64,000 nt of DNA from Mobula hypostoma (GCF_963921235.1 NC_086097.1:141360001-141424000); one strand, 5' to 3'. Shown: positions 1 to 52,796, numbered from the stretch's first letter. Numbers and translations are program-made. The notes: a model not told the origin generated them from the letters alone.

Positions 1-578
1 TGGTCCATTTCTGACACCTCCCTCCCCTTTCTTGATCTTTCTGTCTCTATCTCTGGAGACAGCTTATCTACTGTTGTCTACTATAAGCCTACGGACTCTC
101 ACAGCTACCTGGACTATTCCTCTTCTCACCCTGTCTCTTGCAAAAATGCCATCCCCTTCTCGCAATTCCTCCGACTCCACCGCATCAGCTCTCAGAATGA
201 GGCTTTTCATTCCACGTCCTCCTTTTTTAAAGAAAGGGGCTTCCCTTCCTCCACCATCAAGTCTGTTCTCAAACGCATCTCTCCCATTTCACTCATATCT
301 GCTCTCACCCCATCCTCCCGCCACCCCACTAGGAATAGGGTTTCCCTTGTCCTCACCTACCACCCCACCAGCCTCTGGGTCCAACATATAGTTCTCTGTA
401 ACTTCCGCCACCTCCAATGGGATCCCACCACTAAGCACATCTTTCCCTCCCCCCCCACACTGCTTGCTGCAGGGATCACTCCCTACGCGACACCCTTGTC
501 CATTCGTCCCCACCCCCATCCCTTCCCACTGATCTGCCTCCCAGCACTTATCTTTGTAAGCAGAACAAGTGCTACACA
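1..578 (+). mobile_element. Penelope-like retroelement, left part (RT C-terminal region), interrupted by an LTR insertion
   Basis: Frame 1 reads WSISDTSLPFLDLSVSISGDSLSTVVYYKPTDSHSYLDYSSSHPVSCKNAIPFSQFLRLHRIS, the PLE RT/thumb pattern. It continues at 4224 across an ACACA TSD. Confidence 0.85.
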
Positions 579-3500
579 TGTCATGGTCCGGTCCGTGAAG
601 ACCACATTCCAGTTCATGGTCCGCTCCATCGACATTTGCTCCCGGTTTTCCTGTCTACCCTGTTTCTGTTCCTGTTGAGCACTAATTGAGGCACCTGATT
701 CTCGTTGGAGCTGGCTGCATAAATACCTCCAGAGAGCAGGGCGTGGCTGCTGGATTGTTCTTGTCCTTACTCCTTGTATCCATTCCCGTGCCTTCTGTTT
801 CCTCGCCTGAAGCCCTGCCTTGTCTTGCCGGTAACTCTCGCCTAGCCTCGCCTGTAGTCTTCTCTTGAAGCCACCCTGTACCTAGCTCCCTTCCTGTCCC
901 TCGCCTCCGCCGGGTAAGTCAGGCCATCTTGCCGTTACCCGACGGTTGGTTCTGTCCCTTCCTGTCCCCTGCCTCCGTCGGGTGGAGATCCACGCCCTGC
1001 CCAGGAGTACCGCCCCTGCCCAGGAGTTCCGCACCCTGCCCAGGAATACCGCGCCCTGCACGGGAGTTCTGTGCCCTGCCCAGGAGTTTCGCGCCCTGCC
1101 CAGGAGGAGCTTCAACACCACAAGCTTCAAGCCGCGCCCCAAGTAGAGCTTCAAGACCCCAAGCCCCGAGCCTCGCCCCAAGCCAAGCTTCAAGACTCCA
1201 AGCCTCAATCCTCGCCTCAAGTCTCTAGTCTCAAGCCTCACTTCAAGTCTCTAGCCAAGCCTCGCCTCAAGTCTCTAGCCAACCCTCACCTCAAGTCTCT
1301 AGCCAACCCTCACCTCAAGTCTCTAGCCAAGCCTTGCATCAGGTCTCTAGCCAAGCCTCGCCTCTGGTCTCTAGCCAAGCCTCGCCTCTAGTCTCTAGCC
1401 AATCCTCGCCTCAGGTCTCTAGTCTCAAGCCTTGCCTCAGGTCTCTCAACTCAAGCCTCGCCTCAGGTCTCTAGTCTCAATCCTCGCCTCAGGTCTCTAG
1501 TCTCAAGCCTCGCCTCAGCCCTCGAGTCTCAAGCCTCATCTCAGTTCTCTAGTCTCAAGCCTCGCCTCAGGTCTCTAGTCTCGTCCTGTCTGCCAGCCAA
1601 GTCACTTCCTTGCCTCGTTCTGGGGTCCGAGCCAGAGGTAAGACCCAGGTGCTGGGTCCTTGTCCAGTCTCTGGCTCAGAGTCAAAGCCTGGGTTCCTAT
1701 CTCTCATGTCTAGTCCTGTTCCAGATTCCCGTTTTTTGTGTCCATGTGCTAGCCCTCACCCTCTATCCTAGTCCTGTCCCTAGTACTTCAGTGTCTGTGT
1801 CTGCACTTGGGTCCCTCCCCAGCGCCCATCCTATGACAGAACAATCCAGCCAACTATGGACCCAGCGACACAGACACCGTCGTTTTCCTCTTGCCACCCG
1901 GGGTTCCCTGCTGTTAAATACCCTCGCACCCGCCCGTGTCATCCATAGTCTGGATAGCCTGTTTGGTCGCCAGGAGGCTCCCATAGAGGCGGGGTGGGGT
2001 ACTGTCATGGTCCGGTCCATGAAGTCCGCATTTCGGTTCACGGTCCGGTCCATCGACACTTACTCCAGGTTATCCTGTCTACCATGTTTCTGTTCCTGTT
2101 GAGCACTAATTGAGGCAGCTGATTCTCGTTGGGGCTGGTTGCATAAATACCTCCAGAGAGCAGGGCGTGGCTGCTGGATTGTTCTTGTCCTTACTCCTTG
2201 TATCCATTCCCCTGCCTTCTTTTTCCTCGCCTGAAGCCCTGCCTTGTCTTGCCGGTAACTCTCACCTCGCCTCGCCTGTAGTATTGTCTTGGAGCCACCC
2301 TGTACCTAGCTCCCTTCCTGTCCCTTGCCTCGGTCGGGTAAGCCAAGCCGTCTTGCCATTACCCGATGGTTGGTTCTGTCCCTTCCCGTCCCTTGCCTCC
2401 GTCGGGTGGAGTTCCGCGCTCTGCCCAGGTGATCCGCGCCCTGCCCAGGAGTTCCACGCCCTGCCCAGGAGGAGCTTCAAGACCCCAAGTCTCGAGCCTC
2501 GCCCCAAGCCAAGCTTCAAGACCCCAAGCCTCAAGTCTCTAGTCTCAAGCCTCGCCTCAAGTCTCTAGCCAACCCTCGCCTCAAGTCTCTAGCCAACCCT
2601 CACCTCAAGTCTCTAGCCAAGTCTCGCCTCAGGTCTCTAGCTAAGCCTCGCCTCTAGTCTGTAGCCAAACCTCGCCTCAGGTCTCTCGTCTCAAGCCTCG
2701 CCTCAGGTCTCTATTATTAAACCTCGCCTCAGGTCTGTCGTCTCAAGCCTCGCCTCAGGTCTCTAGTCTCAAGCCTCGCCTCAGGCCTCGAGTCTCAAGC
2801 CTGGCCTCAGGTCTCTAGTCTCAAGCCTCGCCTCAGGTCTCTAGTCTCATCCTGCCTGCCAGCCAAGTCACGTCCTTGCCTCGTTCTGGGGTCCGAGCCA
2901 GAGGCAAGACCCAGGTACTGAGTCCTTGTCCAGTCTCTGGGTCGGAGTCAAAGCCCGGGCTCCTATCTTTCATTTCCAGCCCTGTTCCGGGTTCCCGTTT
3001 TTCGTGTCCATGTCCTAGCCCTCACCCTCTGTCCTGGTCCTGTCCCTAGTACGTCAGTGTCTGTGTCTTGCACTTGGGTCCGTCCCCAGCGCCCATCCTG
3101 TGACAGAACAATCCAGCCAACCATGGACCCAGCGACACAGACACCGTCGTTTTCCTCTTGCCACCCGGGGTTCCCTGCTGTTAAATACCCTCGCACCCGC
3201 CCAGGTCGTCTATAGTCTGGATAGCCTATTTGGTTGCCAAGAGGCTCCCGCACGCGGGGGGGGGGGGGGGATACTATCATAGTCCGGTCCGTGAAGTCCA
3301 CATTCCGGTTCACTGTCTGGTCCTTAACCCTTGCTCCAGGTTTTCCTGTCTACCCTGTTTCTGTTCCTGTTGAGCACTAATTGAGGCATCTGATTCTCGT
3401 TGGAGCTGGTTGCATAAATACCTCCAGAGACCAGGGCGTGGCTGCTGGATTGTTCTTGTCCTTACTCCTTGTATCCCTTCCCCTGCCTTCTGTTTCCTCG

Positions 3501-4223
3501 CCTGAAGCCCTGCTTTGTCTTGCCGGTAACTCTCGCCTCACCTCGCCTGTACTCTTGTCTTGGAGCCACCCTGTACGTAGCTCCCTTCCTGTCCCTTGCC
3601 TCCGTCGGGTAAGCCAAGCCGTCTTGCCATTACCCTACGGTTGCTTCTGTCCCTTCCTGTCCCTTGCCTCGGTCGGGTGGAGATCCGCACCCTGCCCAGG
3701 AGTTCCACGCCCTGCCCAGGAGTACCCCGCCCTGCCCAGGAGTTCTGTGCCTTGCCCAGGAGTACCCCGCCCTGCCCATGAGTTCCGTACCCTGCCCAGG
3801 AGTTCCGCCCTCTGCCCAGGAGGAGCTTCAACACCCCAAGCCTCAAGCCTCGCTCCAGGTCTCTAGTCTCAAGCCTCGCCTCAGGTCTCTAGTCTCAAGC
3901 CTCGCCTCTAGTCTCAAGCCTCGCCTCAGGTCTCTAGTCTCAAGCCTCGCCTCAAGTCTCCAGCCTCATCCTGCCTGCCAGCCAAGTGACGTCCTTGCCT
4001 AGATCTGGGGTCCGAGCCAGAGGCAAGACCCAGGTATTGGGTCCTTGTCCAGTCTCTGGCTCGGAGTCCAAGCCCGGGCTCCTAGCTCTCTTTTCCAGTC
4101 CTGTTCCAGGTTCCTGGTTTTCGTGTCCATGTCCAGCCCTCACCCTGTATCCTAGTCCTGTCCCTAGTACTTCAGTGTCTGTGTCTTGCACTTGGGTCCG
4201 TCCCCAGCGTCCATCCTATGACA
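579..4223 (+). mobile_element. Non-autonomous gypsy (Tf1/sushi-like) LTR element as a tandem LTR-int-LTR-int-LTR array
   Basis: LTRs at 579-1838, 2003-3105 and 3275-4223 with TGTCA...TGACA ends (third starts TATCA). Internal parts 1839-2002 and 3106-3274 each begin GAACAATCCAGC, contain ATGGACCCAGCG and end in a G-rich PPT plus TAC. One 5-bp TSD ACACA (574-578, 4224-4228). Confidence 0.9.
993..1580 (+). repeat. Minisatellites inside LTR1 (~20-bp CCCTGCCCAGGAGTTCCGCG-type and 24/26-bp CTCAAGCCTCGCCTCAGGTCTCTAGT-type units); equivalent arrays in LTR2 and LTR3
   Basis: Visible tandem units. The 20-bp unit occurs about 6, 3 and 7 times in LTR1, LTR2 and LTR3. Confidence 0.9.
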
Positions 4224-5010
4224 ACACATGCCCTTACACTTTCTCCCTCACCAGCATTCTGGGGCCCAGACAATCCTTCCAGTTGAGACGACACTTCACC
4301 TGTGAGTCGGCTGGGGTGATATACTGCGTCCGATGCTCGCGCTGCGGTGTTCTATATATTGGCGAGACCTGACGCAGGCTGGGAGACCGTTTCGCTGAAC
4401 ACCTCCGCTCTGTCCGCCAGAGAAAGCAAGATCTCCCAGTGGCCATACATTTTAATTCCACGTCCCATTCCCATTCTGATATGTCTATCCACAGCCTCCT
4501 CTACTGTAAATATAAAGCCACACTCAGGTTGGAAGAACACCTCATTTTCCGTCTGGGTAGCCTCCAACCTGATGGCATGAACAATGACTTCTCTAACTTC
4601 CGTTAATGCCCCACCTCCCCTTCGTACCCCATCCGTTATTTATCTATTTATTATTATTATTATTATTATTATTCTCTCCTTTTTCTCCCTCTGCCCCTCT
4701 CACTATACTCCTTGCCCATCCTCTGGGCTTCTCCCCTCCCCCTTTTCTTTCTCCCTAGGCCTCCCGTCCCATGATCCTCTCATACCCCTTTTGCCAATCA
4801 CTTTCCAGCTCTTAGCTCCATCCCTCCCCTTCCTGTCTTCTCCTATCATTTCGGATCTCCCTCTCCCGCTCCCACTTTCAAATTTCATACTATCTTTTCT
4901 TTCAGTTAGTCCTGACGAAGGGTCTCGGCCCGAAACGTCGACTGTACCTCTTCCTAGAGATGCTGCCTGGCCTGCTGCGTTCACTAGCAGTTTTTATGTG
5001 TGTTGCTTGA
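4224..5010 (+). mobile_element. Penelope-like retroelement, right part: GIY-YIG endonuclease remnant and 3' tail
   Basis: FTCESAGVIYCVRCSRCGVLYIGET followed by a decayed R.L..RF.EH region. The tail GATGCTGCCTGGCCTGCTGCGTTCAC... recurs elsewhere in the window. Confidence 0.85.
4908..4943 (+). ncRNA. Minimal type I hammerhead ribozyme motif in the Penelope tail
   Basis: AGTC-CTGACGA-AGGGTCTCGGCCC-GAAAC-GTC-GACT. Stem I AGTC/GACT, core boxes CUGANGA and GAAA, stem II GGG/CCC (one extra A), palindromic ACGT stem III, predicted cleavage after C4939. Confidence 0.7.
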
Positions 5011-5011
5011 T

Positions 5012-6365
5012 ATTCTAAAGGGAGAATGAGGGGAACTATGGCTGACAAAGGAAATTAAAGAAGCTTAAAAGGAAAAGAAATGGTATATAAGAAATGGTAT
5101 AGAAGATTGGCATGCTTTATTTATTTATCTATTTATTTAGCATTACAGCGCGGCATAGACCCTTCCGGTTCTTCGGGCTACACAGTCCCAGCATCCCCCG
5201 ACAAACCAAATTAACTATAACCTAACCACAATTGCCAATTAATCTACCTGGTAGGTCTTTGGACTATTGGAGAAAACTGGAGGATCTGGAGAAAACCTAT
5301 ATATTCCATGTGGAGGACACACAGAGAATCCTTTCCGAACGGTGCTAGAGTTGCACTCCGAACTGCGGAATGCCCCGAGCTGTAAAGGCGTCGCACTAAC
5401 CACTACGCTACTGTGGCCCCTTCTAAAAAAAACAACGGGAAGTATCTAAAAAACCCATAAGGAGGGGAAAGATTAAATATGAAGATAAGTTAGCCAATGA
5501 CGTACAAGAATATACAAAACTTTTTTTTCAGATATATAAAGAGTAAAAGAGAGACGAGAGTAGTTATCAGACCACTGGAAAATGACACTGGAGAGGCACT
5601 AATCTGGGGCAAAGGAATGACCGATGAACTTAAGTATTTTGGATCAGTCTTCACTGTGGAAGACACTAGCAGAATGCCAGAAATGCGAGAGTCTTAGGGG
5701 GAAGTGAGTGCAGTTGCTATTATTAAGGAGATGGTGCTTAGGAAGCTGAAAGGTCTGAAGGTAGATACATCTGCTGGATCAGTTGGACTACACCCCAGGA
5801 TTCTGAAAGAGGCATCTGAATCGATTGTGCAGACATTACCGGGAAGAGCTGTTTCAGTCAGTAACCGGCAGGTGCAAGCACTCTGATGGGAAGGGACGTC
5901 AAGAATCACTAAATTGGTTGTGTATGTAGTAATGAAGGCAAATGAAAAGGTTAACGGGTGAGGAACATTTGATGGCTCTGGGTCTGTACTCACTGGAGTT
6001 TAGAAGAATGAGAGAAGATCTCATTGAAACGTATGGAATATTGAAAGGTCTGGACAGAGTGGATGGGGAGAGGATGTTTCCTATAGAGGGAGAGTCTAGG
6101 ACCAGCGGGCACAGCCTCAGAATGCAAGGACGTCCCTTTATTACAGAGATGCGGAAGAATCTCTTTAGCCAGAGGGTGGGGCATCTGTGGAATTCATTGC
6201 CTGGGACGGCTGTGGAGGCCGACATTGAGTCTATTTAAAGCGGAGGTCGATGGGTTTCTTGACTGATGAGAGTGTCAACGGTTACTGGGAGAAGAGGAGA
6301 ATGGGGTTGAGGGGGATCATAAATCGGCCATGATCGTATGTGCAGCAGACTCGATGGGCCGAATG
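5012..6365 (+). mobile_element. CR1-type LINE fossil, internally deleted and interrupted by a SINE
   Basis: ORF2 fragments FFRYIKSKR..., LKGLKVDTSAGSVGLHPRILKE and EEHLMALGLYSLEFRRMREDLIETYGILKGLDRVD, plus a CR1-like 3' tail. Confidence 0.85.
5120..5420 (-). mobile_element. tRNA-derived SINE, V-SINE/HE1-like
   Basis: Minus strand begins GGGCCACAGTAGCGTAGTGGTTAG (A-box-like), has a central GGTTTTCTCC...GTTTTCTCC...AGTCCAAAGAC segment resembling the V domain, and ends in a (TAAA)n tail. Confidence 0.65.
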
Positions 6366-13248: not shown

Positions 13249-13566
13249 ATGTGAAACCCCAGCCTCCGATACTTCGTATTTTCCCACCCGATCGTAAGGA
13301 TCTGGTTGAAAAGGATAAATTTTTTGTGGCTTGCCTGGTGACCAACTTCTTCCCCGAAGTGATCAAAGTCGACTGGGAAGTCCCTGCAACCCAAAATCGA
13401 AAAATTCTGACAGAGCCGGTGAAGAAAATGAGCAATGGTAACTACTCGCTGATTAGCCGCGTGGAAATCTCCAAAGACGAATGGAACAAGCAAACGATCA
13501 CTTGCAAGGTGGGGCACGAGACCGGAAGCGAGAAAAAAGTATCAACTAGCAGTGCAATTAGAAGCG
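13249..13566 (+). CDS. TRGC: TCR gamma constant region exon 1 (Ig C1 domain)
   Basis: Acceptor TTTTTACAAATAG|AT. Reads (D)VKPQPPILRIFPP...VACLVTNFFPEVIKVDW...NGNYSLISRVEISKDEWNKQTITCKVGHET...AIRS with both Cys and the Trp. FFPEVIKVDW resembles human TRGC FFPDVIKIHW. Donor G|GTAAG at 13567. Confidence 0.95.
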
Positions 13567-14514
13567 GTAAGGTCCACAGCTAATTTCGCACAATTTATGC
13601 AAATTCTATTCTTATTTTTCATCTGTCCTGTGCAGTTTCAACTTTAGATGAACCCCTTGTAATTGTAGCCCTTAAATTTGTCTTATTAAATATATTTCCA
13701 AGAAGCAGCGCTGATAAAATTATACCGTTGCCCTCCATTTAATGCACTTTGGTGTGGTCAGTTGGCTTGAAGTTCCCTATCAAACTTACTCCATTTTCCT
13801 CCAATTCACCAACACTGTTCTCTCTAAACTACGTGGGTATCCGGTCTCGCAGTAACTGAAATAATCCCACGCATTGGCCCTTATTGCCGCGCTGTTGGAG
13901 TTTGCTTTTATATAAAGTTAATATAATTTTGAGATTATATTAATATAATTTTGAAATCTGTTAATATAATTGTGAAATACCCTGTAATTAATTGTGTTAA
14001 TGAAAATAGTCCATATTATTCCATAATAAACGCACCACAACCATTTATTTTGAAACATTTTAGAGTTTTAAGGTTGTCAGTGTTTACACAGCACCGTTAC
14101 AAATTGTAACAACAAACACAGATTGTAAGTCGACAGCTGATTGTTAATCAACCGCCGGCCCGCTGAACGCTGACGTTTTCATTCAAAATATTCATAGTAT
14201 GTATATTCCGAAACTAATTTAAATTGCTGTACAGTTGTAAAGAAGAATAGATAGAACATTGTTTGCCACCCGGCTCCGAACCCAATGTCGGACAGACCAA
14301 ATGCTATATAATCACAGAGCGATTAAATATAACAACAGGAATGGTATTAGATATACAGACATCAATGACTTTCCAGTTTCAAATTATAAGCGTGAATTTT
14401 CTTCCGACGCCGGAATTTGGCTGGAGTCCAAAGTTACAAATGTTCTCCGAAATACTCCCATATTTGAGATTCAAATGACATAAAGATGATAAGCCACCCA
14501 CTAGAGTGGGATTT

Positions 14515-21910: not shown

Positions 21911-24900
21911 AGCTTAGTGAATATTGAAAACCAGAGTGCAGAAGACAACAAACTGTGCAAATGTAAATATAAATAAATAGCAATAAATAACGAAAACATG
22001 AGATAATGAGATAAAGAGTCTTGAAAGTGAGATTATTGGTTGTGGGAACATCTCAATGGATAGGCAAGTGAGTGGAGTTCTGTTGAAATAGTTGTGGGAA
22101 AATTTCGATGACTCGGGCAAGGGAAGTTGAGTGAAGTTATCCCCATTTGTTCACGAGCCTGATGGTTGAGGGGTAGTAACTTCTTTTGAACCTGGCAGTG
22201 CTAGTCCTGAGGCTCTTGTACCTTCTACCTGATGGTAACAGTGCACTTTGCTTGTTAGGGAAAATATTACAGCAGTACTCAGGCAGGACAGATTAGAGGG
22301 CTTGTCTACTGAGTTCTTATAGGTGGAGCTGAGAAACAGGAAAGGTATGGCCACATTAGTGAGATTGTATTACAGACCACCCAATAGTCAACGAGAATTG
22401 GAAGAGCAAATCTGCAGAGAGATAGCAGGCAACTGCAGGAAACATAAAGTTGTGGTAGTAGGGGATTTTAATTTTCCATATATTGATTGGGACTCCCATA
22501 CTGTTAGGGGTCTAGATGGTTTAGAGTTCGTAAAATGTGTTCAGGAAAGTTTTCTAAATCAATATATAGAGGGACCAATTAGAGGGGATGCAATATTGGA
22601 TCTCCTGTTAGGAAACGAGTTAGGACAAGTGACGGAAGTCTGTGTAGTGGAGCACTTTGGCTCCAGTGATCATAACACCATTAGTTTCAACTTGATCATG
22701 GACAAGGATAGATCTGGTCCTAGGGTCGAGGTTCTGAACTGGAAGAAGGCCAAAATTGAAGAAATGAGAAAGAATCTAAAAAGCGTTAATTGGGACAGGT
22801 TGTTCTCTGGCAAAGGTGTGATCGGTAGGTGGGAAGCCTTCAAAGGAGAAATTTTGAGAGTGCAGAGTTTGTATGTTCCTGTCAGGATTAAAGGCAAAGT
22901 GAATAGGAATAAGGAACCTTGGTTCTCAAGGGATATTGCAACTCTGATAAAGAAGAAGAAGGAGTTGTATGACATGTATAGGAAACAGAGAGTAAATAAG
23001 GTGCTTGAGGAGTATAAGAAGTGCAAGAAAATACTTAAGAAAGAAATCAGGAGGGCTGAAAGAAGACATGAGGTTGCCTTGGCAGTCAAAGTGAAGGATA
23101 ATCCAAAGAGCTTTTACAGGTATATTAAGAGCAAAAGGATTGTAAGGGATAAAATTGGTCCTCTTGAAGATCAGAGTGGTCGGCTATGTGCAGAACCAAA
23201 GGAAATGGAGGAGATCTTAAATAGGTTTTTTGCATCTGTATTTACTAAGGAAACTGGCATGAAGTCTATGGAGTTAAGGGGAACAAGGAGTGAGATCATG
23301 GAAACTATACAGATTGAAGTCCTTGCTGTCTTGAGGAAAATTAAAGTGGATAAATCCCCGGGACCTGACAGGGTGTTCCCTCGGACCTTGAAGGAGACTA
23401 GTGTTGAAATTGCAGGGGCCCTGGCAGAAATATTTAAAATGTCGCTGTCTACGGGTGAAGTGCCGGAGGATTGGGGAGTGGCTCATATTGTTCCATTGTT
23501 TAAAAAAAGGATCGAAAAGTAATCCGGGAAATTATAGGCCGGTAAGTTTAACATCGGTAGTAGGTAAGTTATTGGAGGGAGTACTAAGAGACAGAATCTA
23601 CAAGCATTTGAATAGACAGGGACTTATTAGGGAGAGTCAACATGGCTTTGTGCGTGGTAGGTCATGTTTGACCAATCTCTTGAAGTTTTTTGACGAGGTT
23701 ACCAGAAAAGTGGATGAAGGGAAGGCAGTGGATGTTGTCTACATGGACTTCAGTAAGGCCTTTGACAAGGTCCCGCATGGGAGGTTAATTAGGAAAATTC
23801 AGTCGCTAGGTATACATGGAGAGGTGGTAAATTGGATTAGACATTGGCTCAATGGTAGAAGCCAAAGAGTGGTAGTAGAGAATTGCTTCCCCGAGTGGAG
23901 GCCTGTGACTAGTGGTGTGCCACAGGAATCAGTGCTGGGTCCATTGTTATTTGTCATCTATATCAATGATCTGGATGATAATGTGGTAAATTGGATCAGC
24001 AAATTTGCTGATGATACAAAGATTGGAGGTGTAGTAGACAGTGAGGAAGGTTTTCGGAGCCTGCAGAGGGACTTGGACCAGCTGGGAAAATGGGCTGAAA
24101 AATGGCAGATGGAGTTTAATACAGACAAGTGTGAGGTATTGCACGTTGGAAGGACAAACCAAGGTAGAACATACAGGGTTAATGGTAAGGCACTGGGGAG
24201 TGCAGTAGAACAGAGGGATCTAGGAATACAGATACAAAATTCCCTAAAAGTGGCGTCACAGGTAGATAGGGTTGTAAAGAGAGCCTTTGGTACATTGGCC
24301 TTTATTAATCAAAGTATTGAGTATAAGAGCTGGAATGTTATGATGAGGTTGTATAAGGCATTGGTGAGGCCGAATCTGGAGTATTGTGTTCAGTTTTGGT
24401 CACCAAATTACAGGAAGGATATAAATAAGGTTGAAAGAGTGCAGAGAAGGTTTACAAGGATGTTGCCGGGACTTGAGAAACTCAGTTACAGAGAAAGGTT
24501 GAATAGTTTAGGACTTTATTCCCTGGAGCGTAGAAGAATGAGGGGAGATTTGATAGAGGTTTATAAAATTATGATGGGTATAGATAGAGTGAATGGAAGC
24601 AGGCTTTTTCCACTGAGGCAAGGGGAGAAAAAAACCAGAGGACATGGGTTAAGGGTGAGGGGGGAAAAGTTTAAAGGGAACATTAGGGGGGGCTTCTTCA
24701 CACAGAGAGTGGTGGAAGTATGGAATGAGCTGCCAGACGAGGTGGTAAATGCGGGTTCTTTTTTTAACATATTTGAATAAATTGGACAGATACATGGATG
24801 GGAGGTATATGGAGAGATATGGTCTATGTGCAGGTCAGTGGGACTAGGCAGAAAATGGTTCAGCACAGCCAAGAAGGGCCAAAAGGCCTGTTTCTGTGCT

Positions 24901-43089: not shown

Positions 43090-46000
43090 GTTGACTGGGA
43101 CTACACTACTGTAAAAGGATAGAATTTATCAAATGTGTTCAGGAAGTTTTCCTTAATCAGTATATAGAAGTCCCAAATAGAAAGTGGATATTAGGGAATG
43201 AGACAGAGCAAGTGACAGAAGTTTGTGAAGGGGAACACGATGCATCTAGTGGTCATATTGCCATTAGTTTCAAAGTAAATATGGAAAAAGATCCGCGGTC
43301 CAGTCCACAGGTTGAGATTCTAAGTTGGAGAAAGGCCAATTTTGATGGTATCAGAAAGGATCGGCCAAGTGTGAATTGGGAAAGGCTGTTTTATGGCAAA
43401 GATGGACTTGGAAAGTGGGAGGCCTTCAAAGAGAAATTTAGAGAGTACAAAGCTTGCATGTGCCCATCAGAATAAAAGGTAAAGATATCAGGTTTAGGGA
43501 ACTTTGGGTTTTCAAGAGATATTGAGGCCCTGGTTAAGGGGAAAAAAGGTGCATAATAGACATAGGCAGGTAGGAACAAATGAGGTGCATATGGAGCATA
43601 AGAAATGCAAGTGAACACTTAAGAAAGAAATCAGGACAGCTAAAAGAAGGCATAAGGTTGCCCTAGCAGACAAGTTGAGGAAGAATCCCAAGGCACACAA
43701 CAGGAATTCTGCAGATGCTGGAAATTCAAGCAACACACATCAAAGTTGCTGGTGAACGCAGCAGGCCAGGCAGCATCTCTAGGAAGAGGTACAGTCGACG
43801 TTTCAGGCTGAGAATCTCGGCCTGAAATGTCGACTGTACCTCTTCCTAGAGATTATGCCTGGCCTGCTGCGTTCACCAGCAACTTTGAAGAATCCCAGGG
43901 GATTTTACAGGTATGTCAAGAGCAAAAGGATCATAATGACAAGATTGGTCCTCTGAAGATCAGAATAGTAATCCATGCCAAAAGAGAAGAGGGAGATCTT
44001 AAATGAATTTCTGTGTCTGTATTTACTCAGGAGATGGACATAGTCTATAAAATTGAGGTAAAGAAGCATCGACTTCATGGACCCTACACAGATTACAGAG
44101 GAGGTGGTGTTTGCTGCTTTGAGGCAAAAGCCTGACAAGGTGTTCCCTTGGATCCCATGGGAGGCAAGTGCAGAAAATGCAAGGATCCTAGCAGAGATAT
44201 TTAAATCATCCTCAGTGACAGATCAGGTAGCGAAGGATATCTAACATTATTCCGCTGTTTAAGAAACGCTCTAAAAAAAAACCAGAAAATGGTAAGTCAG
44301 TGAGCCTGACATCAATAGTGGGAAAGTTATTGGAAGTTATTCTAAGGGGTCGGATATATGACTATTTGGATAGATATGGACTGATTAGAGATAGTCAGCA
44401 TGGCTTTGTGTGTGGTAGATGGTGTCCAACCAATCTTAAGAGATTTTTTTTTTGAGGAAGTTACTAGGAATGTTGATGAAGACAAAGCAGTGGATGTTGT
44501 CTACATGGACTTTAGCAAGACACCTGACAAGATCCCACATGGGAGGTTGGTCCAGAAGTTCAGTCGCTCAGCATTCCACATGAGGGAGTAAATTGGATTA
44601 GGCATTGGCTTTGTGGGAGAAGCCAAGGAGTGGTAGCAGATGGCTGCCATTCTGACTGGAAGTCTGTGACTCGTGGTATGCCGCACGGATTGGTGCTGGG
44701 TACTTTGTTGTTTGTCATCTCCGTCAATGATCTGGATGAGAATGTGGTAAACTCGTTCAGCAAATTTACAGATGACACCAAGATTGGGGGGTGCAGTGGA
44801 CAGCAAGGAAGACTATCAAAGCTTGAAGCAGAATCTGGGCCAGCTGGAAAAATGGGTTGAAAACGGTTTATGGAATTTAATGCAGACAAGTGTGAGGTGC
44901 TACACTTCGGAAGGACCAAACAGAGTAGTGCTTTAGAACAAAAGGAGCTTGGAATGCAGGTCCATAATTCATTGAAAGTGGCACCACACATAGATAGGGT
45001 CGTAAAGAAAGCTTTTGGCACATTGGCCTTCATAAATAAATGTTTTGGGTACAAAAGATGGAATGTTATGTTGAAGACATGGCTCCAGGTTGACCAAGGA
45101 TGGGAGCTCAACATTCACGGATATTCAATATTCAGGAAGGATAGACATGAAAGAAAAGGAGGTGGGGTAGCATTGCTGGTTAGAGAGGAGATTAACACAA
45201 TAGAAAGGAAAGGCATTAGCCAGGAGGATGTAGAATCGATACGGGTAGAGCTGCATAACACTAAGGGGCAGAAAACGCTGGTGGGAGTTGTGTACAGGAC
45301 ACCTAACAGTAGTAGTGAGGTTGGGAACTGCATTAAACAGGAAATTAGAAATGTGTGCAATAAAGGAACAGCAGTTATAATGGGTGACTTCAATCTACAT
45401 ATAGATTGGGTGAACCAAATTGGTAAGGGTGCTGAGGAAGAGGATTTCTTGGAATTTACGTGGGATGGTTTTCTGAATCAACATGTCGAGGAACCAGCTA
45501 GAGAGCAGGCCATTGTAGACAGGGTATTGAACAATGAGGAAGGGTTAGTTAGCAATCTTGTCGTGCGAGGCCCCTTGGGTAAGAGTGACCATAATATGGT
45601 GGAATTCTTCATTAAGATGGAGAGTGACATAGTTAATTCAGAAACAAAGGTTCTGAACTTAAAGAAGGGTAATTTTGAAGGTATGAGGCTAAGATAGCTA
45701 ATTAGCTAAGGTAGATTGTGAATTAGCTAAGATAGACTGGCAAATGATACTTAAAGTGTTGACGGTGGATATGCAATAGCAAGCACTTAAAGATCGCATG
45801 GATGAACTACAACAATTGTTCATCCCAGTTTGGAAAAAGAATAAACCAGGGAAGGTAGTGCACCCGTGGCTAACAAGGGAAATTAGGGATAGTATCAATT
45901 CCAAAGAAGAAACATACAAATTAGCCAGAAAAAGCGGTACATCTGAGGACTGGGAGAAATTCAGAGTCCAGCAAAGGAAGACAAAGGGCTTAATTAGGAA

Positions 46001-48420
46001 AGGGAAAAAAGATTATGAGAGAAAGCTGGCAGGGAACATAAAAACTGACTGTAAAAGCTTTTATAGATATGCGAAAAGAAAAAGATTGGTTAAGACAAAT
46101 GTAGGTCCCTTACAGGTGAATTGATCATGGGGAACAAGGACATGGCAGACCAATTGAATAACTACTTTGGTTCTGTCTTCACTAAGGAGGACATAAATAA
46201 TCCTCCGGAAATAGTAGGGGACCGAGGGTCTAGTGAGATGGAGGATCTGAGGATAATACATGTTAGTAGGGAAGTGGTGTTAGGGGTAAACTGAAGGGAT
46301 TAAAGGCAGATAAGTCCCCAGGGCCAGATGGTCTGTATCCCAGAGTGCTTAAGGAAGTAGCCCAAGAAATAGTGGATGCATTAGTGATAATTTTTCAAAA
46401 CTCTTTAGGTTCTGGATTAGTTCCTGAGGACTGGAGGGTGGCTAATGTAACCCTGCTTTTTAAAAAAGGAGGGAGAGAGAAACCAGGGAATTATAGACCG
46501 GTTAGCCTGACATCGGTGGTGGGGAAAATGCTAGAGTCAGTTATCAAAGATGTGATAACAGCACATTTGGAAAATGGTGAAATCATCAGACAAAGTCAGC
46601 ATGGATTTGTGAAAGGAAAATCATGTCTGATGAATCTCATAGAATTTTTTGAGGATGTAACTAGTAGAGTGGATAGGGGAGAACTAGTGGATGTGGTATA
46701 TTTGGATTTTCAAAAGGCTTTTGACAAGGTTCCACACAGGAGATTAGTGTGCAAACTTAAAGCGCACGGTATTGGGGGTATGGTATTGATGTGGATAGAG
46801 AATTGATCGGCAGACAGGAAAAAAAGAGTGGGAATAAACGGGACCTTTTCAGAATGGCAAGCAGTGACTAGTGGGGTACCGCAAGGCTCAGTGCTGGGAC
46901 CCCAGTTGTTTACAATATATATTAATGATTTAGACGAGGGAATTAAATGCAGCATCTCCAAGTTTGCGGATGACACGAAGCTGGGCGGCAGTGTTAACTG
47001 TGAGGAGGATGCTAAGAGGATGCAGGGTAACTTGGATAGGTTAGGTGAGTGGGCAAATTCATGGCAGATGCACTTCAATGTGGATAAATGTGAGGTTATC
47101 CACTTTGGTGGCAAGAAAGGAAAACAGATTATTATCAGAATGGTGGCCGATTAGGAAAAGGGGAGGTGCAACGAGACCTGGGTGTCATTGTACACCAGTC
47201 ATTGAAAGTGGGCATGCAGGTACAGCAGGCAGTGAAAAAGGCGAATGGTATGCTGGCATTCATAGCAAGAGGATTTGAGTACAGGAGCAGAGAGGTTCTA
47301 CTGCAGTTGTACAAGGCCTTGGTGAGACCACACCTGGAGTATTATGTGCAGTTTTGGTCCCCAAATCTGAGGAAAGACATTCTTGCCATAGAGGGAGTAC
47401 AAAGAAGGTTCACCAGATTGATTCCTGGGATGGCAGGATTTTCATATGATGAAAGACTGGATCGACTAGGCTTATACTCACTGGAATTTAGAAGATTGAG
47501 GGGGAATCTTATTGAAACGTATAAAATTCTAAAGGGATTGGACAGGCTAGATGCAGGAAGATTGTTCCTGATGTTGGGGAAGTCCAGAACAAGGGGTCAC
47601 AGTTTAAGGATAAAGGGGAAGCCTTTTAGGACCAAGATGAGGAAAAACTTCTTCACACAGAGAGTGGTGAATTTGTGCAATTCTCTGCCACAGGAAACAG
47701 TTGAGGCCAGTTCATTGGCTATATTTAAGAGGGAGTTCGATATGGCCCTTTTGGCTAAAGGGATCAGGGGGTATGGAGAGAAGGCAGGTACAGGGTTCTG
47801 AGTTGGATGATCAGCCATGATCATACTGAATGGCGATGCAGGCTCGAAGGGCCGAATGGCCTACTCCTGCACCTATTTTCTATGTTTCTATGTAAGTCGT
47901 ATACAAGGTTGGTGAGGCCTAATTTGGAATATTGTGTGCAGTTTTAGTCACCTACCCACAGGAAAGATGCAAAGAAGGTTAAAAGAGTACAGAGAAAATT
48001 TACAAGGATGTTGCCGGGACTGGAGTTCATGAATTATAAGGAAAGATCGAATCAGTTAGGACTTTTGGAATGTAGAAGATTAAGCAGAGATTTGATAGAG
48101 GTACACAAAATTATGAGGGGAATAGAGAGGGTAAATGCAAGCAGGCTTTTTCTGCTGAAGTTGGGTGGGACTATAACTAGAGGTCATGGATTAGGGGTAA
48201 AAGGTGAAAAGTTTGAGAAATGTCTCTACTCAGAGGGTTATGAGTGTGGAACGTGCTACCAGCATAAGCAGTGCTTGCGAGCTCAATTTCAAAGTTTAAG
48301 AGACGTTTGGAAAGGTACATGTATGGTAAAGGTGTGGAGGGCTGTGGTCCTGGTGCATGAACTGGATGGGCCAAAGGGCCTGTTTTCTGTGCTGTACTTT
48401 TCTATGACTCTATGACCATG
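43090..48420 (+). mobile_element. Older CR1 (43090-45076 and 47894-48420) with a younger CR1 nested at ~45077-47893
   Basis: The ORF 44870-45697 switches from RT C-terminal to endonuclease sequence at 45077. The nested copy has APE, RT (GVPQGSVLGP, KFADDTK) and a (TTCTATGT)n tail. The host resumes at AAGTCGTATACAAGG. Confidence 0.88.
43691..43886. mobile_element. Penelope-tail fold-back insertion forming a 147-bp near-perfect palindrome, 11-bp TSD
   Basis: TSD GAAGAATCCCA (43680-43690, 43887-43897). 73-bp arms (43741-43813, 43815-43887) with about 4 mismatches. Confidence 0.88.
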
Positions 48421-50713: not shown

Positions 50714-52796
50714 CCATATATTCTGGAGTATAAGCCGACCCCCCATTTTCAAGGTTAAAAAAGTGACTTTTTCATGTTACCTTTGTATAAGCCAACCCTT
50801 TTTGTAGAGGCAACACACATAAAAGTTGCTGGTGAACGCAGCAGGCCAGGCAGCATCTGTAGGAAGAGGTGCAGTCGACGTTTCAGGCCGAGACCCTTCG
50901 TCAGGACTAACTGAAGGTTTTTGATTTAACCAGAAAAGATCACAAGATCTCACATGCCGGTACTCAGCTTTGCCAGATCCGGAACCTGGAAATTTTGTGA
51001 ACCAATACTTGCTAAGAAAACAGGCCTACACATTATAGAGCGTTATAAGCAAATTCTTAATAAATGAATCAGGGAGGGAAGTTTTGAATTAGGTTCCCAA
51101 GGGTAAAGAACCCTCTGAAATGTAACCCCCGTGAAACCATTTAGCGCCCATTGTAATCTCGTTAAGACATAACCCGGGGTGGTGGGATCCGTACGTGTAC
51201 TCAGTATTGAGTTTGCGAACACCACGTACAAAAGATTAAAACGAACACGATAGGATGCTGGCTTCAAGCTGAAGGTTGTTGATTTTGCTAAAGGAACGAA
51301 TAATTCTGCAGCTGCTAAGAAGTTTAGTGTAAATGAGAAACAAGTGAGAAAGTAGAGAAAGGCAGAGGACACACTGAGGGAAATGCCAAAGATGAAATGT
51401 GCAAACTGCGGGAAAACATGCCAGTGGCCAGAACTGGAAGAAAAAGTTTTAGAGTGGATGAATCACCAGCGATCGTCTGGATACATTGTTACCAGAGAAA
51501 TGATTCGAGTTCAAACGTTGAAATGGGCCGAAAAACACCGTGAGGTCAGCGAAAATTTCAAAGCTACGCGAAGTTGGTGCACCAGATTTATAAATAGATG
51601 TGGTCTTGTGTTGAGACAAAAAACAGATTGCTCAGAAAGTTGCCTAGCGACCTTGAGAATAAGATTATGGCCTTCCAATCGTTTGTAATCAAGCATCGAA
51701 AGGCACATTCTTACCCGCTCTCACTGATTGGTAACATGGACGAGACGCCAATGTTCTTTGATTTTGCTGGCAACCGCACTGTCAATCAGAAGGGGGAGAA
51801 AACAGTCCTTGTCAAAACAACTGGACACGAGAAGCAACGTTTTACTGTCGTGTTAATGTGTATGACTGACGGAACCAAACTACCACTGACAGTGATTTTT
51901 AAGAGGAAAACATTCCCAAAGAAAGAAAAATTCCCACGGGGTGTTGTTGTTTACATTTAAGAACACGGCTAGATGGACGAAGCAGGTTGCTCGAAATGGG
52001 TTAAAGAAGTGTGGCATCGATATCCCAAAGGTTTCGGGAAGGAAAAGTTGCTACTTGTCTGGGACATGTTCAAAGCGAGACAAAAGCAGCATTGAAAGCT
52101 GAAAATACAGGCATTACAGTCATCCCCGGTGGTTTGACGTTCCTGCTCCTGCCATTAGATGTGAGTTTAAACAAACCATTCAAAGAATTCATGCGTCGAC
52201 AGTGGAACGAATGGATGATGTCTGGAAATCAGTCATTCACTCCAGCAGGAAATATGAGGGCCACATCTCTAGCTACAGTTTGCAAATGGGTAGTGCAATC
52301 GTGGGAGGAAATGGAGGCCAAGTGCATTGTGAAGGCCTTCAAGAAGTGCAGCATCAGCAATACTTTGGATGGCACTGAAGATCATTTGCTTTGGGAAGAA
52401 GATGATGGAGATTTGGCAGCCAGTAAAGCTGCAAATGACGATGTCAAAGCAGAAACTGACAATCCTTACGATGATATGGTGACTGCCGAAGAATGGGACG
52501 CGATTTTCGGAGAGTGAGATAATGGAGTGTAAGAGTTTCAAGCTCTGAACATTTGACGACAACAGTGTGTACAAGTAAAATGAGAAACAGAATGTGTTTT
52601 GTAGATCTTTTCTTTTGTGTAGATTTCATAAGCATTTGTATTTTCTTTTGTATTTGACTCAAAAACAGCCAATAAATACGACCTGTCTTCCGTGTATTCG
52701 TTCTTCCAAAGTTGGCACCCCCTGTACAAGCCAACCCACTAATTTTAGGACCAAATTTTAGGGCTAAATTCTCAGCTTATATACCTGAATTTATGG
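50714..52796 (+). mobile_element. pogo/Tc2-type (POGK-like) DNA transposon with decayed transposase
   Basis: TIR CCATATATTCTGGAGTATAAGC / GCTTATATACCTGAATTTATGG with TA on both sides. Transposase ~51240-52517 has a Brinker-like DBD (DAGFKLKVVDFA), a CENP-B HTH (WPELEEKVLEW, FKATRSWCTRF) and DDE_1 (GNMDETPMFFD, LDVSLNKPFK), with stops and frameshifts. Confidence 0.9.
50873..50908 (-). ncRNA. Minimal type I hammerhead ribozyme motif in a Penelope-tail fragment (~50809-50916) inside the pogo element
   Basis: Minus strand AGTC-CTGACGA-AGGGTCTCGGCCT-GAAAC-GTC-GACT, with all core nucleotides present. Confidence 0.7.

Follow-up and report, generated by a model that had tools for sequence, protein, structure and literature searches.

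A gene-less LTR retrotransposon array in the ray Mobula hypostoma carries a sequence signature of Tf1/sushi-type self-priming

A 64,000-nucleotide stretch of DNA from Mobula hypostoma (GCF_963921235.1 NC_086097.1:141360001-141424000) was analyzed; this whole stretch is called the window here, and positions are counted from its first letter. At positions 579-4223 it harbors, on the + strand, an array of three long terminal repeats (LTRs) and two short internal regions with a total length of 3,645 bp. The site located directly downstream of the internal LTR ends is complementary to a segment within the LTR itself, at which the transcript of the element is predicted to begin. An initial annotation, made from the sequence alone, had proposed that such an element primes reverse transcription with its own RNA instead of a tRNA. 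We have examined the structure of the array, the complementarity and the alternatives to this proposal.

Architecture of the array and its insertion site

The array has the order LTR-internal-LTR-internal-LTR, each LTR starting with TGTCAT and finishing with ATGACA, and is bordered by short direct repeats. It comprises the following parts.

574-578, target-site duplication ACACA, left copy, 5 bp
579-1838, + strand, LTR1, 1260 nt, with ends TGTCAT...ATGACA
984-1582, + strand, minisatellites within LTR1, with units of 20 nt, 39 nt and 24-26 nt
1839-2002, + strand, internal region 1, 164 nt, non-coding
1985-1999, + strand, polypurine tract 1 (AGAGGCGGGGTGGGG), 3 nt upstream of LTR2
2003-3105, + strand, LTR2, 1103 nt
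3106-3274, + strand, internal region 2, 169 nt, 89% identity to internal region 1
3254-3271, + strand, polypurine tract 2 (G-run), 3 nt upstream of LTR3
3275-4223, + strand, LTR3, 949 nt, with its 3' end abutting the target duplication
4224-4228, target-site duplication ACACA, right copy, 5 bp

Purine-rich tracts upstream of LTR2 and LTR3 were found on the + strand only, and the opposite orientation of the element was rejected on this ground. The array interrupts the open reading frame (ORF) of a decayed retroelement, which occupies positions 1-578 and 4229-4603. Excision of 579-4228 restores this host ORF in frame (KCYT/CPYT); since the flanks rejoin in one ORF, both the boundaries of the insertion and the true end of U5 are fixed. 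Furthermore, the 3' end of LTR3 lies directly against the target duplication and thereby defines the U5 terminus, which is equivalent to position 1838.

The lengths of the three LTRs (1260, 1103 and 949 nt) differ because the copy number of the minisatellites varies. These repeats are located at 984-1582, 2408-2849 and 3679-3968, within the presumed R-U5 part of the LTRs; the 20-nt unit is present in 6.2, 3.2 and 7.2 copies and the 24-26-nt unit in about 15, 13 and 5 copies in LTR1, LTR2 and LTR3, respectively. Outside the repeats, identity was 90-92.5% for all three pairs of LTRs, and the two internal regions share 89%. Hence, this is an old array, in which the divergence of all three LTRs set in more or less simultaneously. 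This star-like divergence indicates that the array arose at insertion or soon afterwards, its source being either an unequal crossing-over at an early stage or a complex reverse-transcription product. All of these LTR and internal copies stem from a single insertion, after which they underwent neutral drift.

The element has no coding capacity. ORFs of 110-161 aa which overlap it consist mostly of LTR sequence and, as judged by eye from their translations only, are of low complexity and derived from repeats. Elsewhere in the window, a gypsy ORF of at least 180 aa was not found. Additionally, a blastn search with LTR1 and the internal region retrieved nothing in the window outside 579-4223, and a 21-nt U5/PBS pattern (PBS, primer-binding site, described below) gave 0 matches in metagenome contigs.

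Complementarity between the LTR and the primer-binding site

The features which take part in the predicted priming are listed first.

718-725, + strand, TATA-like motif CATAAATA; further copies at 2142-2149 and 3413-3420
749-761, + strand, predicted self-primer and predicted 5' end of the transcript (GCTGGATTGTTC plus T); further copies at 2173-2185 and 3444-3456
1791-1814, + strand, U5 arm of the U5-leader stem; copy 2 at 3057-3081
1839-1850, + strand, PBS 1, directly after LTR1, pairs with 749-760
1858-1877, + strand, leader arm of the U5-leader stem; copy 2 at 3125-3144
3106-3117, + strand, PBS 2, directly after LTR2

The 12-mer GAACAATCCAGC adjoins both internal LTR ends (1838 and 3105) at a distance of 0 nt. 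Its exact reverse complement, GCTGGATTGTTC, is present in single copy in every LTR, at 749-760, 2173-2184 and 3444-3455. The initial annotation had reported this complementarity, and all of its coordinates hold, with the difference that the pairing actually extends over 13 nt: 749-761 pairs with 1838-1850, and T761 thus reaches the last base of the LTR, A1838. The edge of the pairing is sharp at 749, and at the other end three extra pairs follow beyond a bulge of 1 nt. An energy of -23.8 kcal/mol was calculated for the primer-PBS duplex. Because LTR3 ends at the equivalent of 1838, against the target duplication, the site at 1839-1850 is identified as the PBS by its position.

Within the 64-kb window the 12-mer and its complement have five matches as compared to 0.38 expected, and neither occurs outside these five sites even if one mismatch is allowed. 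We then prepared 20,000 dinucleotide-preserving shuffles of LTR1 and determined the longest reverse-complement match to a word located 0-5 nt past the LTR; a PBS-anchored match of at least 12 nt was obtained in one of them (1/20,000). In a published survey, a self-primer was predicted if complementarity to the 5' LTR started 0-5 bp after it and comprised at least 10 bp (PMC6317226). For the element described here the corresponding values are 12 bp and an offset of 0, or 13 bp if the last base of the LTR is included.

The PBS is enclosed by a second pairing, between U5 and the leader, which the initial annotation had also described and which is present in both copies. Positions 1791-1801 of U5 pair with 1867-1877 of the leader and positions 1808-1814 with 1858-1864; the loop between these arms is about 43 nt long and holds the PBS. 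A 111-nt segment containing this stem folded with a minimum free energy of -33.5 kcal/mol in copy 1 (z -3.7) and of -39.3 kcal/mol in copy 2 (z -4.0); in either case this value was equalled by 0/200 shuffles. The U5-leader duplex alone accounts for about -35 kcal/mol. The sole difference in the stem among the copies is C1815, which is replaced by G in copies 2 and 3; a G-U pair is broken by this difference, and it is uncompensated. The internal region folded alone showed no structure beyond chance (z 0.03).

Self-priming requires a duplex of the RNA 5' end with the PBS and, in addition, two duplexes formed by PBS-adjacent sequences with the LTR, an arrangement known as the 'pretzel' (PMC10085805, PMC4600332). 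Two of these parts were seen, namely the central one, of primer with PBS, and the one which the downstream flank forms with U5. Pairing of the upstream flank was limited to the 3 bp after the bulge, apart from matches at the level of shuffles.

The motif CATAAATA stands alone in LTR1 (1,260 nt): no other site comes within one mismatch of TATAAA. Altogether, three 8-mers with at least 7 A/T exist in this LTR: CATAAATA, its one-base shift and a T-run at 1732. CATAAA is a functional TATA variant, which acts at the same spacing in well-studied vertebrate promoters. The 12-mer begins 31 nt past the C that forms the first base of CATAAATA and 24 nt past its last base; the spacing of about 29 nt given in the initial annotation is therefore only approximate. 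Positions -1/+1 of the predicted start at 749 are T/G. The sole TATA-like motif would thus place +1 at the first paired base, G749. Both ends of the pairing are thus meaningfully placed: one is the position required for the minus-strand primer and the other is the predicted first base of the transcript.

Self-priming and its alternatives

These results are probably best explained by a decayed, non-coding and non-autonomous LTR retrotransposon, the RNA of which was built for tRNA-independent self-priming of the Tf1/sushi type. As a signature in the sequence, the resemblance to Tf1 and sushi appears well supported, and no check run here went against what the initial annotation had proposed in this respect.

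The following course of replication is suggested. Transcription by RNA polymerase II would begin at G749, some 31 nt past CATAAATA. With its first 12-13 nt the RNA would pair with the site directly after U5 (1838/1839-1850), either in trans within a dimer or by a fold-back which would span about 1.09 kb, and the 20-bp U5-leader stem would keep the PBS in its loop (about 43 nt). A cut after nt 12, made by the RNase H that belongs to the reverse transcriptase of a partner element, would follow, and the resulting 12-nt RNA would prime synthesis of minus-strand DNA. The first base to be copied would be A1838, which would generate the exact CA terminus of the LTR as it is seen at LTR3. Plus-strand synthesis would be primed by the G-rich polypurine tract, and integration would create the 5-bp duplication. 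All proteins would have to be supplied in trans, most likely by a sushi-like chromovirus. The element itself is not assignable to the Tf1/sushi clade of Ty3/gypsy chromoviruses, because this clade is defined by the phylogeny of reverse transcriptase, RNase H and integrase together with the integrase chromodomain, and the element is gene-less.

The internal region had also been called exactly the cis-module needed for mobilization in trans. The PBS, the stem and the polypurine tract are indeed kept, but this wording was an overstatement: no role is assigned to about 107 nt of this region, and no poly(A) signal is apparent.

Several observations weigh against self-priming of the Tf1/sushi type. 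The third 'pretzel' duplex was not found, as the best pairing of 1815-1837 with the 140 nt past the primer did not exceed that of shuffles. A distance of about 1.09 kb separates primer and PBS, and an autonomous partner element was not found in the 64-kb window. The copies of the LTR and of the internal region go back to one insertion and are not independent; hence, their agreement is silent on selection and offers no covariation. Furthermore, a search of the three LTRs revealed no conserved poly(A) hexamer variant downstream of 749. ATTAAA at 2716, the sole variant in this part, is specific to LTR2 and located within tandem repeats; beside it, only a GT-rich run at 1791-1802 was noted. The Tf1 scheme requires an R longer than the primer. 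An R of primer length does not suit the plain form of this scheme, because strong-stop DNA must keep R after removal of the primer. Finally, the Sushi LTR model contains a clear AATAAA near its 3' end, which is missing from the LTR studied here (PMC3601003).

The most serious rival accepts the complementarity as real and assigns a different role to it; we regard it as unlikely. Here, polyadenylation would be signaled by CATAAA, either as its sole role or in addition to that of a TATA box; the 13-mer would lie either where R borders on U5 or at the extreme 3' end of the RNA, and would then serve for priming by the RNA 3' end or for circularization between R and PBS during strand transfer, and not for a 5'-end cleavage as in Tf1. 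CATAAA is in fact the only poly(A)-hexamer variant common to all three LTRs, and it is followed by CA (737-738) and by a U/GU-rich run (755-779), an arrangement typical of poly(A) sites in vertebrates. However, CATAAA is weak as a poly(A) variant and good as a TATA variant, the first paired base follows at 31 nt, the exact spacing of a start site, and a poly(A) tail would block a primer at the 3' end. We know of no documented mechanism by which an RNA 3' end or an R-PBS duplex primes in this way. In favor of this rival, dual TATA/poly(A) motifs with a very short R are known from some LTR groups (PMC3601003).

A dual motif of this kind would allow a further variant, which we consider quite improbable. 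If the single A/T-rich motif combined the roles of TATA box and poly(A) signal, R would consist of the self-primer of about 12-13 nt, and both ends of the RNA would pair with the PBS. Reverse transcription could then be primed by the RNA 3' end, or pairing of R with the PBS could replace a normal first strand transfer, and the element would represent an undescribed variant of self-priming within a large family of gene-less ray elements with giant LTRs.

It is highly improbable that the element was primed by a host tRNA or by a tRNA half, in which case the 12-mer would not be the PBS or the primer RNA would be encoded outside the window. A PBS of the tRNA type is sought as TGG located 0-5 bp after the LTR (PMC6317226). 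No TGG was present within 0-5 nt of the LTR end; the first one follows at 18 nt in copy 1 and at 17 nt in copy 2, and in each leader it lies inside the leader stem. This finding argues against a primer formed by a tRNA 3' end and agrees with the earlier statement that a tRNA primer is not used. A search with ARAGORN revealed no tRNA genes in the 64-kb window, and positions 1-6000 gave no Rfam match to ribozymes, retrozymes or tRNA-like RNAs at E up to 1. Priming by half of a tRNAMet is known in Ty1/copia lineages (PMC6317226), and positions 1855-1866 (TATGGACCCAGC; copy 2: 3122-3133) match 11/12 of the complement of nt 26-37 of the initiator tRNAMet (sequence from PMC8216282), the half-tRNA region of the copia type. 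However, the 17-nt half-tRNA site of the copia type fails even if 3 mismatches are allowed, copy 2 contains 2 mismatches in the tRNAMet-like 12-mer, and a comparable tRNAMet match occurs somewhere in 64 kb in 21% of shuffles. Furthermore, the site starts 16 nt beyond the end of U5, and priming from there would yield a longer LTR. Half-tRNAMet priming at 1855-1866 was rejected because its position is wrong and the full site fails; the match is due either to chance or to a vestige.

Least probable, and in fact very unlikely, is a chance complementarity with no role in replication: the element is dead, its copies are not independent and the TATA motif was chosen after the fact, but an anchored match of this length arose in only 1/20,000 shuffles, the pairing has its other end at the start which the sole TATA-like motif predicts (an extra coincidence of roughly 1 in 100), and the PBS is located in the loop of a significant stem.

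Sequence context and comparison with known systems

The nearest Atlas clusters of the host ORF interrupted by the array carry PF26215 HTH_animal, which is commonest in rotifers; a Pfam search with the flanking pieces of this ORF gave no match. We take its downstream part to resemble a GIY-YIG nuclease, in which case the host would presumably be a Penelope-like element. The larger ORFs of the window belong to remnants of long interspersed nuclear elements with endonuclease (Exo_endo_phos_2) and reverse transcriptase (RVT_1), located at 22323-24780, 44870-45697 and 46345-47801. As judged by reading the translations, an ORF at 13251-13583 resembles a constant domain of the immunoglobulin type, and two adjacent ORFs at 51598-52517 resemble a remnant DDE transposase of a cut-and-paste transposon. 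Positions 4905-4950 (CTGACGAAGGGTCTCGGCCCGAAACGTCGAC) show a resemblance to what we assume to be the conserved central ('Deu') domain of a family of vertebrate short interspersed nuclear elements.

As an alternative to a tRNA primer, self-priming is rare; its proof is confined to fission yeast, and for sushi elements of fish it is a prediction. The gene-less ray element keeps little beyond the primer, the PBS, the U5-leader stem and the polypurine tract, and thereby shows what the enzymes of a partner would need in cis. With this element, the signature also covers cartilaginous fish and a distance between primer and PBS of more than 1 kb; no concept is changed. LTR finders which demand a tRNA-type PBS will miss this family; therefore, its description is of practical value for repeat annotation. 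The element may also serve as a minimal template for testing the mechanism in a vertebrate. It presents a known hallmark in a tidy but ordinary form, and the missing poly(A) signal may leave room for a variant with a short R.

TRIM elements possess LTRs of roughly 100-250 bp, a total length under about 1 kb and usually a PBS of the tRNA type, LARD elements possess a long internal region, and TRIMs also form tandem arrays of LTRs. As in TRIM and LARD elements, the LTRs described here surround a short non-coding interior keeping only PBS and polypurine tract, and mobilization is presumed to occur in trans. Unlike those of TRIMs, the LTRs are 949-1260 nt long and the PBS is of the self-priming type; unlike that of LARDs, the internal region comprises only about 165 nt. 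Assignment to the TRIM class was rejected because of the length of the LTRs, and assignment to the LARD class because of the tiny internal region. TRIMs are also known from animals (PMC6934838).

Tcn1 (gypsy) and TAR (copia) from plants were found by the same self-primer criterion that was applied here (PMC6317226). In contrast to the ray element, these are autonomous plant elements, and the sequences provided no evidence of kinship with it.

Tf1 creates a target duplication of 5 bp, as does the present element, and its primer is said to be 11 nt long, reportedly from the work of Levin in 1995/1996. In Tf1, Tf2 and Tj1, which are self-primed Ty3/gypsy chromoviruses of fission yeasts, the PBS that directly follows the CA end of the 5' LTR is likewise the complement of the RNA 5' end of the element itself, and U5 likewise pairs just downstream of the PBS to form a U5-IR-like stem (PMC4600332, PMC10085805). 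Unlike Tf1, the present element is devoid of gag-pol, its predicted primer comprises 12-13 nt, and about 1.09 kb lie between primer and PBS as compared to the short R-U5 of Tf1. As further differences, a third 'pretzel' duplex and a poly(A) signal were not found in the array.

The vertebrate sushi-group chromoviruses are reportedly treated by Butler et al. in 2001. With this group, which includes sushi-ichi and its relatives, the ray element shares a vertebrate host and predicted self-priming; for the sushi group the prediction includes the 'pretzel'. The Sushi LTR model has the end motifs TGTYANR ... CNTNACA, of which TGTYANR is a motif for the integrase (PMC3601003). The 5' LTR end of the array, TGTCATG, fits TGTYANR and its 3' end, TATGACA, fits the second motif at 6/7 positions, but these motifs are too short to discriminate. 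Unlike those of Sushi, the LTRs of the array have about twice the average length, contain minisatellites and are devoid of AATAAA. Self-priming as such is a common feature of the Tf1/sushi chromoviruses, which was established experimentally for Tf1 and is predicted in the vertebrate sushi elements (PMC10085805, PMC4600332, PMC6317226).

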